A stretch of 64,000 nucleotides of DNA, taken from assembly GCA_937625935.1 (NCBI GenBank), contig OW569390.1, positions 310,001-374,000 on the forward strand. Direction: 5' to 3'. A program made the position numbers and the translations under genes. Numbering within the stretch: the first letter of the stretch is position 1; each line of letters opens with the position of its first letter. The notes beneath the pieces are model-generated. The model did not search any database. It worked only from the letters and a program-made list of their open reading frames with translations, and was not told the origin of the DNA. The stretch is from Tetramitus jugosus. Lineage: Eukaryota > Protista > Heterolobosea. Shown piece by piece: positions 47,241 through 63,903 of this stretch.

Positions 47241-47957
47241 ATGGATCAAGTAAATGAATGGCAGGCAGATGTGGACGAACTGAGATCATTTCTCAGTCTA
47301 GCAAAGCGCAAAAAGGTTAAAACACTGCTCAACAATGAGATCGCTATGCTTGAAAACAAGATTCTAAATGCCACACCGACGGAGTATTCTCAGCCCGCCA
47401 AAATATCAGCTACGACATTGGCATCTGTCAACAAAACATCCCAAGCAAATTTCCGTCCCATTACATCGTATGGGTTCGAACAGACTGAAAATGATGTTAT
47501 TCATGTGTATATCTCACTAAAGGGTGTTTCTGAATCGACTCGCACAGAATTGAGCTGCACAGAACAGTCTTTTGAGCTCAAGATTTATGGTGTGGTGGAT
47601 CCATCGGACAAGAGCAGCAACAAGGAAGAGAAAAATTATCGATTACAGATTGCGAGAACGGATGGAACCATAGACAAGGATAAGAGCTTTGTTAAGGTGA
47701 AGCCAGATCGTGTCATTGTCAACTTGATCAAGACGAGTGAGAGGCATTGGTTGCAATTGTCGTACAAGAAGCAAGTAGGTGAGGATTTTGATGCTGAGAG
47801 AGATGATCCAGCAAAGGGATTAATGGGTATGATGAAACAGTTGTACGAGGAGGGAGATGAAGACATGAAGAAGACGATCGCACAGACTTGGGCAAACAAT
47901 GAGAAACAAAAGAACAAGTATGCATTTCCAAGTCGAAAGGAAATGATGAGAAATTAA
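47241..47957 (+). CDS. CACYBP: Calcyclin-binding protein/SIP (helical hairpin, CS domain, SGS domain)
   Basis: D..EL..FL..AKR.KVK.LL, ITSYGFEQ, DPAKGLMGMMKQLYEEGDEDMKKTIA..W. Confidence 0.9.
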   Translation: MDQVNEWQADVDELRSFLSLAKRKKVKTLLNNEIAMLENKILNATPTEYSQPAKISATTLASVNKTSQANFRPITSYGFEQTENDVIHVYISLKGVSESTRTELSCTEQSFELKIYGVVDPSDKSSNKEEKNYRLQIARTDGTIDKDKSFVKVKPDRVIVNLIKTSERHWLQLSYKKQVGEDFDAERDDPAKGLMGMMKQLYEEGDEDMKKTIAQTWANNEKQKNKYAFPSRKEMMRN

Positions 47958-59496: not shown

Positions 59497-61116
59497 CTAC
59501 AGGCAGGTGGTAATCCAGGTGTTGAAATCAAAGTTTGAGTTGGGTAGAAGATTAACTACAACATCCACAAACTCTGTCAACTTTGCTCGAAGTTGTCTCG
59601 AATCTTGTTGGATCAGTGTACGAATCTGATGGGAAGAGAACTCGCTTGTGATAAGACGCGACATATCATGCCAAAATTGTTCTGTTATCGTCGTGCCAGT
59701 CTTGGTAGCAGGAACTACAGAGATGAGCAAGGTTCCCGTGTGAGAACATCGTTTCTTTCGAAGAACAGTCTCTAGAGTATGAATCTCCTTGATCATATTC
59801 CTGTATTCGCTGAATAGATCTGGCAGTGCCAGATTTGACACGTTGACTCGCTGGCTGATGGCACGATTGATCGCTGTTAATATCTGCTGAACTATGACTC
59901 TGTCCTTTTTCATGCTTGCAATGTTCTTTGAAATAATTTGCTCATTGATCACAGAGTACAATGTGTTCATATTGAAGAACACTTGAGAACTTGAGGCAAT
60001 CTGCGATTGATTAAATTGACGACATCCGTTCAACAATACAGCCAACGAAAACTCCAAAACAGTTTTCCGAATCGAACGCAAGCTGTTCAACTCTTGATCA
60101 ATGACATGAACTCCAGTTGCTAGATATCTGCTCTTGTCCTTGTCATACTCTAATAAATTATTGTTCTCCAATTCATACAAATATAGGGCTATGTAGGCCA
60201 TGCCCGATGGAACATCGGAAACCTTCGAGTCCAAATCCCTATTCACCCACAATGAAAATAACTCGTGATCCAACTTGTTTGACTCTGGTTGTACCGTTGT
60301 TTGATGATGATCTTGACTGGTCGTACTTGCTGCAGAAGCAGAACATAGCTGCACAATTGTTTTTTGAACTTTGATCATCGTTGTCAAGATTTTGTCCACA
60401 AATCGCATCATATCTACCGCCTGAATCATATTTCTCAATTGAATAATTCGACTCTGAATCATTCCACTGTAGGACTGTTGACCAATCATGTATCGAGTCT
60501 GCAATCGATTGACCGATGATTGCAATTCATTTACATGCTCTCTAATCGCTTTTAATTCATTCTCAAGCTCTGTACTGTGTAGAGCTACAGTTTGATTCAC
60601 TAGTCCCTGTTCATGCTTGACCACCAATTGATGAATTTGTCGATCAATGTGAGAAATACCATGTTGTAGTCTCTCTAGGTTTGTTCTGTCCTTTCGATCA
60701 TCATCTTCATTATCATCATCACCACCACCACCACCACCAATACCATTCTCATCATCACCATCACTCATCATTCCTTCAATGTCGTTATCATCATGGTCAT
60801 CACGAGTCACATTTTGATCATGTGTGTTTTCATCATCATCATCATTGGCAATCGATTGTTTTTTACGCTTATTCTTCTTTGTTTTCTTGTGCTTCTTCTT
60901 GTTGTTGTGTTCATGTTGATGTTGTGATTGTTTTTGATTATTGTTATTCGTGTGATATTGGAGCAAGTGAGTTGATAGGAAGGATTGACAGGAGAATTCA
61001 GAGTCTAGAAATTGAGCCAACAGTGGATCTCTTCTCAAAACAGAGAATTGATCTTGATTGTTGATCGTGGTGGACACAGTTGGAGTAGCTGTGTGATTGA
61101 TGTTGTTGTTTTCCAT
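59497..61116 (-). CDS. COG5: COG5-like Golgi tethering subunit (short form)
   Basis: FLDSEFS..SF, LERLQHGISHIDRQIHQLV..H...LV.Q, NQSQIASSSQVFFNM; 539 aa. Confidence 0.72.
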   Translation of the reverse strand: MENNNINHTATPTVSTTINNQDQFSVLRRDPLLAQFLDSEFSCQSFLSTHLLQYHTNNNNQKQSQHQHEHNNKKKHKKTKKNKRKKQSIANDDDDENTHDQNVTRDDHDDNDIEGMMSDGDDENGIGGGGGGDDDNEDDDRKDRTNLERLQHGISHIDRQIHQLVVKHEQGLVNQTVALHSTELENELKAIREHVNELQSSVNRLQTRYMIGQQSYSGMIQSRIIQLRNMIQAVDMMRFVDKILTTMIKVQKTIVQLCSASAASTTSQDHHQTTVQPESNKLDHELFSLWVNRDLDSKVSDVPSGMAYIALYLYELENNNLLEYDKDKSRYLATGVHVIDQELNSLRSIRKTVLEFSLAVLLNGCRQFNQSQIASSSQVFFNMNTLYSVINEQIISKNIASMKKDRVIVQQILTAINRAISQRVNVSNLALPDLFSEYRNMIKEIHTLETVLRKKRCSHTGTLLISVVPATKTGTTITEQFWHDMSRLITSEFSSHQIRTLIQQDSRQLRAKLTEFVDVVVNLLPNSNFDFNTWITTCL

Positions 61117-61392
61117 TTTTTTTTGTTCGGTGATTTGCTTTTTGTGATGTTCAAAGATTAAAGCTTTGCCATGACAAAGATAACAGGGAGAATGATTCCA
61201 TGAAGCGGGAGAGATATAATTCGAAAATAAATGGTTTTATGTACACATAAGCTGCTTATGCTCTTTTGTCGCTTGCGTAACTCTTTTAAAAACAAGTGAT
61301 CGTTTCTTCTTCGGAAGCTTTCAACCTAAAACCTGCAGCACAGTTTGTTTTACTTGAAGATTGATCGATACAGAGAGATCAATAAGTGCTCA

Positions 61393-62127
61393 TTATGTAC
61401 CTATAGAGTGGAGAGACATAAAGATATACAACATAGATAGATATATAGAGAGGCACATGTTTTAATCCTGACATGTTCAAAACATTGGTTGGATGGCGAT
61501 AGAGCAATAGATAGCTAATCATCCATCTTTTGATCACACACAAGGAGACAAAGGAAACACAAACAAAAACAACAACAGTGCAAGCAACAAGTGCGTGTAA
61601 ATATCATGTGAGTGAGAAAATCACAGAAAACAAGTGATTGTTGTTGAGTGGTTCACTGTGCTTTTGATGCGAAGTTGTTTGAGTAGAAAATGAGTGTGTG
61701 TGAAGTGAGTGTTTGCTTTGTGCACTACTAACCAGTACTAACCATCATCATCTGAATAGGATATTGTCACTAACGAGTTGATTCCACTTGAAGCTGAACC
61801 TCTGGCGACGCTTGCTGTCACTCTGTTTGCTCTGCGCGTTGTGAAACAAAAAAAATTGCCCTGTTAGCAAATGTGCATTTGAATTTTACAAGAATAAAAA
61901 AAGGGCATGTGAGATTGAGAGATTGAGAGGTTTGCGTACCTGTTGATTGAATTAATGGACTCAAATGCGCCCATTGGGCTGGATGATGATGTCGACGCAA
62001 AATTGTTCATGTTGGAAGCACTTGCAAAGTTTCTTGTGCTGTTTGCACTCAATCCTCTGGATGCTTTGTTGCTGTTTTGTGCAATAAATCTTGATGCGCC
62101 TCTGATAACGTTGCCTCCCCTGAACAT
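61393..62127 (-). CDS. ~90-aa mitochondrion-targeted microprotein, NFD6/NOXY2-like, with alternative last exons (exon 1 62127-61940; exon 2 61822-61743; e.g. exon 3 61400-61393)
   Basis: Presequence-like MFRGGNVIRGASRFIAQ... Intron 61939-61823 (GTACGC..GCTAAC..CAG) gives PMGAFESINSINRVTASVARGSASSGINSLVTISYSDDDG. Donor GTTAGT at 61742 joined to acceptor ...CTCTATAG gives G-T-stop. Confidence 0.7.
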
Positions 62128-62252
62128 TTTGTTGTTTGATAAACTTGGATTATTCAATGTAGTACTTCGTGTTTTTTGGTTTGCGAGATTTGGTGGAGTA
62201 ACTTTGCATTTGTGAAAAAAACTTTGTAACGATGGCTGTCGGCGATTAAAAA

Positions 62253-62260
62253 TTCCCCGC
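62253..62260 (+). promoter_or_regulatory. Candidate promoter element TTCCCCGC upstream of RIT1
   Basis: Identical octamer to those at 305-312 (-) and 1385-1392 (+), 20 bp before the ATG. Confidence 0.4.
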
Positions 62261-62280
62261 TCAAAGTTAACAAAAACAAC

Positions 62281-63903
62281 ATGTCCAACAAATGGCTAAA
62301 GAAGAAGTTTGCTGCGGAGGAAGATGATTCTTCTTCAGAGGAGCACTCTAGTAGTGAAAGCGGGAGCGAGTCGGATGAAGTCACAGACGAGAAAGTGGAG
62401 TTTGAAGGTTCATCAGATGACGAGGAAGAAGACAAGAACAACTGCACAACCAAAGATGATGTTCTCAATTTGTTATCAATGATCAATGAGCATGGCTCTC
62501 TGAAATTTCACAAATTGGCGCGAAAAATTCAAACCGAGACGGACAATATACAATCGCGGCTTCAATCCGTGCGTTATGACTCTGAGTTTGTGAGTGATGT
62601 GAAGAAAATGTATCCGTCGTTTGGATTATTTGCGAATTTGAGATGTGGTCAATGGTATTGTCCAAGTTACGACGATACTTGTTATTTTAAGAGCACTGAT
62701 GGTCATTTTGGACAGTGGGAGTTTTCGACAATGAGATTGAATATCAATGTATTGATTGCCGCCTATCGATTAAATGGTTTGATTATTGTGGATTCAACGA
62801 GAAGGGGAAAGAGCTTTCCTGATGCTCTCTCAAAAACTGTTCCTATTTGGGTGTCTGTGATGAATCGTTTAATCTACCGATATTGCGAAGGAGAGAATAT
62901 GACTGTTGAGCCGGGTCTTGAATTGCCGTATTGGCTTTCAAGGAGTGAAGTTTCGCAAATTGAAACTCGCATGGAGCGATTCGTAGCAACTGCTGTGGAT
63001 AAAACGATTGATTGGAACGACTTTTTCAATAATAGACACAAGGAGCTTTTCACGTATATGTTGAAAGATTCTAAGCGCATAAAGTACATGAGATGTCTCT
63101 GGCTGCACAAAGGAAAAGATATCGAGTTCTCAAATTTGTTAAACAATGACAATTTAGACTTCATCCCTATTCTTTGTGTGAGTGCTAGTGATCCTAATTT
63201 CCCTGAGAAATCGTTCAGTTGGCGGTATATTCCAGGTGCAGGTGATGATCATGAGTCCTGGTCTGAAGGATTGACGTCACAGATGTTTTATACGAATGCA
63301 GACAATATTTTAGAGGATAGAATATCAGTAGAAGAAACTGAGAGAAGAGTTCATGCAATTGTACTGGAGAATGCCAAACAGTTTTCAAAGGATCATTCTG
63401 AAGCGACAATGGTTGCTATAGGTCGATCTCCGCAACGCCTGTTTCTGGGGCGGAATGCTCCCCGGTATCAGTTTTCTTCGACAGAGGTATTTGCGATTAT
63501 CATGTGCCAAGATCCCGATGATATCAAGAATCAGAGCATTGAGTATTCAGGTGCATTGCTGCGTTTACCCATCAAGGATCACAAGAAGTACAAGAACTGT
63601 TTAGGACAAAACTTGTCTGCTGCCATCCAATTTGCGACACTTCATTTGGCCAAGGGTCATAATCTATTGATCACAGACGATACTGGCAACAATGAGAGTG
63701 TCGCCTTGCTCGTGGGAATCATGTGTGCAACATTTGGAGATGAAGGTGCCAACAAGGATGTATTCTTGGGATCTGAATTGGTCGATCCCTCGCACTTGAC
63801 TAAAGTTCACATTCGACAACGCTTGTCCTACATTCAATCCTACCACAACAATTCCAATCCAAGTCGAAACCTGATGAAACAACTTAACAGATCCTATCTT
63901 TAG
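62281..63903 (+). CDS. RIT1: Initiator tRNA A64 2'-O-phosphoribosyltransferase
   Basis: ANLRCGQWY, YFKSTDGH.GQW.FS..RLN, VDSTRRGK.FPDALSKTVPIW, YIPGAGDDHESW, C-terminal NPSR.LMKQLN. Confidence 0.94.
   Translation: MSNKWLKKKFAAEEDDSSSEEHSSSESGSESDEVTDEKVEFEGSSDDEEEDKNNCTTKDDVLNLLSMINEHGSLKFHKLARKIQTETDNIQSRLQSVRYDSEFVSDVKKMYPSFGLFANLRCGQWYCPSYDDTCYFKSTDGHFGQWEFSTMRLNINVLIAAYRLNGLIIVDSTRRGKSFPDALSKTVPIWVSVMNRLIYRYCEGENMTVEPGLELPYWLSRSEVSQIETRMERFVATAVDKTIDWNDFFNNRHKELFTYMLKDSKRIKYMRCLWLHKGKDIEFSNLLNNDNLDFIPILCVSASDPNFPEKSFSWRYIPGAGDDHESWSEGLTSQMFYTNADNILEDRISVEETERRVHAIVLENAKQFSKDHSEATMVAIGRSPQRLFLGRNAPRYQFSSTEVFAIIMCQDPDDIKNQSIEYSGALLRLPIKDHKKYKNCLGQNLSAAIQFATLHLAKGHNLLITDDTGNNESVALLVGIMCATFGDEGANKDVFLGSELVDPSHLTKVHIRQRLSYIQSYHNNSNPSRNLMKQLNRSYL

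Follow-up and report, generated by a model that had tools for sequence, protein, structure and literature searches.

A 93-residue orphan protein of Tetramitus jugosus, encoded by a gene with its stop codon inside a splice donor

A spliced gene for a small protein was found on the minus strand of Tetramitus jugosus DNA, close to one end of the window (the whole stretch of 64,000 nucleotides analysed here; assembly GCA_937625935.1, contig OW569390.1, positions 310,001 to 374,000). The microprotein gene is real, conserved and protein-coding, and its product of 93 amino acids (62 + 31, with the C-terminus SYSDDDG) is an orphan by the sequence searches described below. The gene sits in an intron-poor genome yet has two introns, and the stop codon of its reading frame lies within the first of two identical donors of the second intron. 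Taken together, the evidence makes it reasonably probable that this is a real orphan gene for a probable mitochondrial protein, with a layout that buffers the product against the choice of splice sites.

All coordinates below are those of the window, and the features of the gene are on the minus strand. In the window sequence, the ATG at 62127 opens a frame of 62 codons. The 5'UTR covers at least 62128 to 62168, the furthest position reached by an RNA contig (X1, record 7), and there was no RNA depth beyond 62175. The coding part of exon 1 (61940 to 62127) comprises the 62 codons and the AG of a split Arg codon, is translated as MFRGGNVIRGASRF...SPMGAFESINSIN, and has E56 as the earliest acidic residue of its product. 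It ends in AG/GTACGC, its last base being 61940. Intron 1 (61832 to 61939; 108 nt, GT..AG) reads GTACGC...TGCTAAC...CAG, with the TGCTAAC 30 nt ahead of the CAG. As the codon is split AG/A, intron 1 is in phase 2 and not in phase 1; the sequence-only reading, made without database searches, gave phase 1 for the first donor of the terminal intron. Exon 2 up to that donor (61743 to 61831) encodes (R)ANRVTASVARGSASSGINSLVTISYSDDD and the first base of a Gly codon; read on in frame from 61831, it gives (R)ANRVTASVARGSASSGINSLVTISYSDDDG and then TAG.

The stop codon TAG (61738 to 61740) makes up positions +3 to +5 of donor A (GTTAGT, 61737 to 61742; phase 1), as in G/GT TAG T, so that the use of donor A removes the stop. 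Donor B (GTTAGT, 61727 to 61732) is a 10-nt tandem copy of donor A with the same G/GTTAGT heptamer, and had been missed when the donor at 61742 was proposed. Because donor B lies downstream of the TAG, an intron that starts there is confined to the 3'UTR, and the encoded protein has DDDG as its end. Two acceptors follow, acceptor 1 (AG at 61528-61527) and acceptor 2 (AG at 61402-61401). In its core form, from donor B to acceptor 1, intron 2 covers 61527 to 61732, and the donor-A form starts at 61742. The segment 61401 to 61526 is the 5' part of exon 3 with acceptor 1 and is intronic with acceptor 2. Joined to acceptor 1, donor A reads G/AT GGA TGA (D, G, stop), and joined to acceptor 2 it reads G/GT ACA TAA (G, T, stop). 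The common 3' exon (61235 to 61400) was covered by X7 record 19 and X1 records 1-2, and the RNA contigs end at about 61235-61250. On the sequence, all the coordinates and in-silico tails of the earlier reading were correct.

Part of the stretch was contained in 24 public runs (one search). Seven of these are recorded as RNA; at least six studies contributed them, and most are metatranscriptomes of soil. Four runs were mapped on 61000-62400: X1 and X2 (soil metatranscriptomes), X7 (an oligo-dT metatranscriptome) and X23 (the source organism), which, from its full coverage and its loose ends at GATC sites, looks like DNA. The joint 61831/61940, from which intron 1 has been removed, was present in X1, X2 and X7, three independent metatranscriptome studies. 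Intron 1 had no depth in these three runs and was covered in the DNA run X23, and every RNA contig that crosses intron 1 has it spliced. In X1, X2 and X7 there was likewise no depth in the promoter or in the adjoining RIT1-type gene (see below), and the neighbouring genes were essentially uncovered. In all seven RNA runs the share of the stretch that they contain was of the size of an mRNA, and the gene appears to be well expressed. The spliced contigs and the conserved orthologues thus bear out the proposal that the minus strand hides a spliced gene for a microprotein resembling a presequence, whose size had been put at about 90 residues.

Four types of joint were found at the terminal intron, all with GT..AG ends, and each of the two donors was paired with both acceptors. 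Donor A was joined to acceptor 1 in X1 (61526/61743, giving DDDDG and a stop) and to acceptor 2 in X1 (61400/61743, DDDGT and a stop); donor B was joined to acceptor 1 in X7 (61526/61733, with 99 nt on the shorter side) and to acceptor 2 in X1 (61400/61733), in both cases giving DDDG and a stop. The three joints in X1 have only 22-30 letters on the shorter side, and all are exact, local and bounded by GT..AG. In X2, a contig covering 61506-61702 falls within intron 2 and spans acceptor 61527, which fits intron retention or pre-mRNA; retention is probable, and a retained intron 2 would give DDDG. Contigs of X1 and X2 stop exactly at 61743 and 61733, as is expected where assemblies break at the branches between isoforms. 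Contig depth is unfit for ranking the isoforms. The claim that several 3' isoforms vary the C-terminus thus stands, the RNA contigs differing in the last one or two residues. Of the acceptors put forward, 61527, 61401 and 61832 were in use; no RNA contig of X1, X2 or X7 used 61823, 61333 or 61326, and since contigs lose rare forms, rare use of these sites is possible.

Variation between strains also points to a coding sequence. Among the runs, strain differences in exon 1 were seen at 61971, 61996, 62014, 62017 and 62065; worked out by hand, four of the five differences are synonymous third positions and the fifth is G53S. The X7 strain has indels in the 3'UTR (24 gap letters) and none in the CDS. 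Between two of the relatives described below (L005 and L006) pN/pS was 0.46, and the open reading frame is kept in the relatives at the syntenic place, with in-frame gaps and the same start and stop positions. As a separate observation, X23 also contains sequence of another haplotype or strain, which differs by five substitutions and one 1-nt deletion in the promoter shared by the RIT1-type and microprotein genes (62235-62280).

Relatives were reached via a neighbouring gene, since direct searches with the exons gave none. The divergent neighbour at 62281-63903 encodes a RIT1-type tRNA ribosylphosphate transferase. The two database proteins nearest to it, at 53% identity, are encoded on the environmental contigs L004 (from JGI, 8.2 kb) and L005 (from Logan, 2.1 kb). 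On both, an orthologue of the microprotein gene, reading MLRGGNFLRGTTRF...IVFESPNAIKRWNRITNNRTRISDDSLMNVAYSDDD(G), is found upstream of RIT1, head to head; a PHD-WD40 neighbour downstream is common to L004 and the window. A third contig, L006, agrees with L004 at 100% identity over 629 nt, belongs to the same organism and supplies the full end of the orthologue, ...YSDDDG and TAG. The relative matched exon 1 with 40% identity (E = 6e-7) and exon 2 with 45% identity (E = 6e-6), YSDDDG being identical, so that the DDDG tail is conserved. L005 is 87.6% identical to L004.

The synteny is only local. The gene for a Siah-interacting protein is 2.4 kb from RIT1 in L004 (4389-5132) and 14 kb away in the window (47247-47954), and the folylpolyglutamate-synthase-like and PHO4 neighbours of L004 are on other contigs here (C16 and C7). 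The RIT1-microprotein promoter of the relatives (L004:263-397, L005:304-434, L006:233-367) holds TTTTGGCGCGGG, an E2F-like site, of which there is no exact copy in the promoter of the window (62128-62280).

The introns of the relatives were compared with those of the window. Intron 1 of L005 interrupts exactly the same split Arg codon (AAGAG/GTACCT...TACAG/ATGG), and L004 and L006 are without an intron at this position. At the position of the terminal intron, L006 is again without an intron, with the arrangement of TAG inside GTTAGT the same as in the window. Intron 1 is thus conserved in L005; at the terminal intron, the motif of donor A, the end of the exon ahead of donor B (CTG) and the beginning of exon 3 are identical in L006, whose intronless sequence may derive from RNA or from DNA. 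Intron 1 also has a tandem AG 9 nt downstream of its acceptor (61823), which falls in the conserved codons AAC AGA (Asn-Arg), and L005 has a tandem AG at the corresponding site (around 20-10 on its minus strand; TACAG/ATGGAACAG/). Because it lies within these conserved codons and recurs in the relative, the tandem acceptor of intron 1 is read as a by-product of coding.

The nature of L004 and L006 bears on the history of the introns. That they span several genes, both strands and promoter regions suggests that they derive from DNA. That both introns are absent while L005 keeps intron 1, and that L004 breaks at the donor, suggests that they derive from RNA: the final base of L004 is the base directly before GTTAGT, and a break at the first donor would be expected if the contig were RNA-derived with isoforms branching there. 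The window genome's orthologues of the other genes of L004 and L006 are all intronless, which fits either origin. If the two contigs are DNA, the lineage would have lost both introns via a processed copy of the second-donor isoform, leaving DDDG alone.

Around the stop codon the conservation is at the nucleotide level. About 34 nt are identical between the lineages (window vs L006), from the final six codons through the stop and the donor region into the beginning of exon 3. The first part (61733 to 61758; TATTCAGATGATGATGGTTAGTA..CTG) is identical save for a 2-nt insertion in the relative, and the second (61519 to 61526; ATGGATGA) is the first 8 nt of exon 3, found in L006 directly after ...CTG. 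The identical pieces are thus TAT TCA GAT GAT GAT GGT, then TAG TA..CTG with the insertion, and then ATGGATGA, read as D-G-stop when joined to the first donor. Elsewhere, window and L006 are saturated at synonymous sites (pS 0.73 for exon 1, 0.62 for exon 2), and outside the tail the same codon is used at 13 of the 33 conserved residues; the 3'UTRs past ATGGATGA are barely alignable. The pieces that are contiguous in L006 correspond to the window product of splicing from donor 61732 to acceptor 61527. By this comparison, three elements are held constant at the nucleotide level: the first donor together with the stop that it contains, the end of the exon ahead of the second donor, and the first 8 nt of exon 3. 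Should the relative have an intron between ...GTTAGTATACTG and ATGGATGA, together with GATGATGATG-ATGGATGA joints, alternative splicing would be conserved.

The same data could be read with splicing in a minor role, the block of 34 nt being a cis-element of the mRNA around the stop, such as one for protein binding or translation termination, into which an intron was inserted, perhaps by tandem duplication of GTTAGTA, so that the splice variation would be noise. The block is contiguous and intronless in L006, splicing from donor B to acceptor 1 rebuilds the L006 sequence exactly, the donors form a 10-nt tandem repeat, and conservation reaches 18 nt upstream of the donor, beyond the need of a splice site. 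Against this, no structure or Rfam family was found and the block is unique in the genome; moreover, L005 keeps intron 1, and loss of introns in L004/L006, or an RNA origin of these contigs, is at least as likely as gain here. We therefore regard a cis-element as improbable.

Several other explanations of the block and of intron 2 were tried and rejected. The minimum-energy fold of intron 2 pairs its CACACAC and GUGUGUG ends, and it did not differ from dinucleotide shuffles (z = 0.08); with no Rfam match in intron 2, its reading as a structured RNA, a mirtron or a snoRNA host was dropped. GAUGAUGA...CUGA was considered as a box C/D-like or K-turn element and dismissed by hand, as the flanks are without pairing. 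Nor is the block a repeated genomic motif, the exact copy being unique in the genome and near matches (100) at about the level of a reversed control pattern (82). A further sequence in the 3'UTR may be recorded here: a TA-rich patch with a Pumilio/Puf3-like core, UGUAUA(U/C), aligns between the window (~61425-61440) and L006 (~705-725); in the window it is within the segment removed by acceptor 61401, and it could be a chance product of AT-richness.

We infer that this layout has been retained because it buffers the protein against the choice of splice site, and not in order to diversify the product. The two donors, 10 nt apart and both GUUAGU, are equally imperfect, each mismatching U1 at +3, and would compete; if a donor is to contain an in-frame stop at +3 to +5 and still have the G at +5, hardly any sequence could be better than GUUAGU. 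With the TAG inside the G/GTTAGT donor, an identical donor 10 nt on and two acceptors in use, a near-identical protein would be made whatever site is chosen. Retention or donor B would give DDDG, and donor A would give DDDDG or DDDGT, since a stop is met two codons past either acceptor. Every route would end the reading frame within two codons, and the variable part would be the 3'UTR, whose length would range from roughly 160 to 500 nt. A relative with DDDG only, as a genomic origin of L004 and L006 would imply, fits buffering, and not any need for the cassette.

The sequence-only reading had instead proposed a switch, in which splicing sets the last residues, or uses the position of the stop and NMD as a sensor; a deliberate change of the end (G-end, DG-end or T-end) could alter the stability, import or partners of the peptide. 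Several isoforms do coexist in one soil sample (X1), and ATGGATGA, with its D-G-stop after donor A, is kept in the relative; the end of L004 at the base before GTTAGT is as an RNA assembly would end at an isoform branch, and the X1 and X2 contigs end likewise at 61743 and 61733. The tails, on the other hand, differ by one extra Asp or Thr, and acceptor 2 is without an AG at the matching place in L006. The second donor is within a few bases of the stop, and classical junction-based NMD rules would ignore it. In the 3' region, 17 AG sites lead to a stop, and with five of them the tail would be of two residues or fewer, so that short tails alone are weak evidence; and the relative, if L006 is genomic, has fixed a single form. 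A deliberate switch is thus unlikely, and its extension to a conserved switch in heterolobosean amoebae, in which the cassette of ~34 nt, through its two donors and two acceptors, sets the C-terminus (Gly-end or Thr-end, three or four Asp) and the 3'UTR according to the mitochondrial or splicing state, is slightly less likely again. The isoform data fit buffering at least as well as tail swapping.

The arrangement resembles tandem alternative 5' splice sites and NAGNAG acceptors in having two near-identical, closely spaced sites in use with minimally differing products. It differs in that the pair here brackets the stop, one choice being coding and the other affecting the 3'UTR only, and in that the cassette is conserved at the nucleotide level between diverged species. 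With 3'UTR introns and with the early-stop introns of intron-poor eukaryotes that tolerate retention it shares a stop at the start of the intron, so that the unspliced message ends the reading frame at once; retention of early-stop introns usually gives a truncated protein or an NMD target, whereas here the full protein, to within one residue, would result from the retained, donor-A and donor-B forms alike.

As to the protein itself, the N-terminal ~55 residues are basic and rich in Ser, Ala and Asn. In both lineages the first 54-55 residues have six Lys/Arg and no Asp or Glu. Motifs of the form R-x-(F/Y/L)-(S/A/T) fall at residues 24-35, with RGLS at 24 and RNFA at 32 in the window and RSYT at 26 in the relative. 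An acid-free basic N-terminus and R-2/R-3 sites for MPP and Icp55 are classical marks of a cleavable mitochondrial presequence. The presequence call was made with a simple rule-based check and not with a trained predictor; from the MPP-type motifs and the acid-free basic N-terminus, mitochondrial import is put forward, and we consider it somewhat likely that the N-terminal region directs it. The mature remainder would begin at about residue 34-35 and be of ~58 residues, with one basic helix (FESxNxIxRxNRxT) and the acidic end YSDDDG. An AlphaFold model of the relative was mostly disordered (mean pLDDT 52), with one helix over PNAIKRWNRITNNRTRISD (pLDDT ~71). The conserved parts are an N-terminal MxRGGNxxRGxxRF, FESxNxIxRxNRxT and SLxxxxYSDDDG.

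The protein could instead be real and not mitochondrial, acting as a cytosolic or nuclear basic-helix peptide; MxRGGNxxRGxxRF resembles a piece of an RGG-type RNA-binding sequence. The first 14 residues, of which ten are conserved, are more conserved than is usual for a plain presequence, and the model has one predicted helix and no domain, both in keeping with such a peptide. The stretch of 54 residues without an acid and the R-3-type motifs, present in both lineages, are nevertheless typical of presequences, and a location outside mitochondria is the less probable reading. A mitochondrial protein of this kind would have, like nuclear-encoded small mitochondrial proteins with R-2/R-3 sites for MPP/Icp55, a basic, acid-free, Ser/Ala-rich N-terminus with motifs at 24-35; it differs from them in that it matches no named subunit or assembly factor and has a mostly disordered mature part with an Asp3-Gly tail.

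No family was found for the protein in database searches. The exons were searched apart, and the uninterrupted open reading frame of the relative (L004:2-262, P0121:45-132) was used as a full-length proxy. Pfam gave no match for either exon, for the read-through frame or for the whole frame of the relative. With exon 1, phmmer gave no match against 1.84 billion representatives (a library from public genomes, in which plant proteomes are expected). In a word search of 5.8 billion clusters, exon 1 had no candidate and the frame of the relative retrieved itself only. There was no usable match for either exon in the ESM Atlas, and among PDB sequences the two exons and the relative gave just one chance match (0.6). 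A metagenome scan with exon 1 peptides produced 600 pattern matches, none of them confirmed, and a degenerate DNA pattern for VTASVARG...DDDG matched nothing. No paralogues were found in the genome (26.35 Mb, 56 contigs), in which the protein of the relative had three weak matches (E = 0.02-0.3), namely the locus itself and two places at chance level.

The protein had been linked to the plant NFD6/NOXY2-like family, as a diverged member of a family ancient in eukaryotes. A passage in one paper gives NFD6/NOXY2-like as the name of an InterPro family (PMC12903786). The literature searched on this family offered little beyond the name, and no statement on alternatively spliced C-termini ending in DG or DGT. 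The likeness is of a general kind, in the small size, the presequence-like N-terminus (presumed mitochondrial in the plant proteins) and a proposed 'ES ... TAS' spacing; no sequence similarity was detected with the exons or the frame of the relative, Pfam, word search, HMMER (exon 1), Atlas and PDB being empty. The core proposed as P...ES....TAS is not kept in the orthologue, which is without the Pro and has TNN for TAS: SPMGAFES...RVTAS of the window stands against SGSIVFES...RITNN, with FES only in common. Membership was not supported by these searches, and we hold it to be very improbable; the plant NFD6/NOXY2 family is not extended to protists. Nor was an ancient swapping system supported, the protein family having been found only in this amoeba group.

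The genome searches also located the rDNA, which is on separate contigs. SSU copies were found on contig C53 of the genome (G000) at 2363, 21614, 44510, 65553 and 87458, on alternating strands, and also on C55. The SSU genes, of 2117 nt, are ~19-23 kb apart in alternating orientation, which suggests a palindromic or extrachromosomal element. C54 and C56 have an identical, weaker SSU match of ~1650 nt, which is probably mitochondrial.

With this gene, a protist provides a concrete example of a small gene that had stayed hidden: it was absent from word and profile searches of public protein collections, and in the relative a gene caller had mis-started its open reading frame. The layout with a stop within the donor would be a natural example of an open reading frame that is robust to the choice of splice site. 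Its conservation at the nucleotide level may make it a tractable model of why intron-poor eukaryotes keep particular introns.
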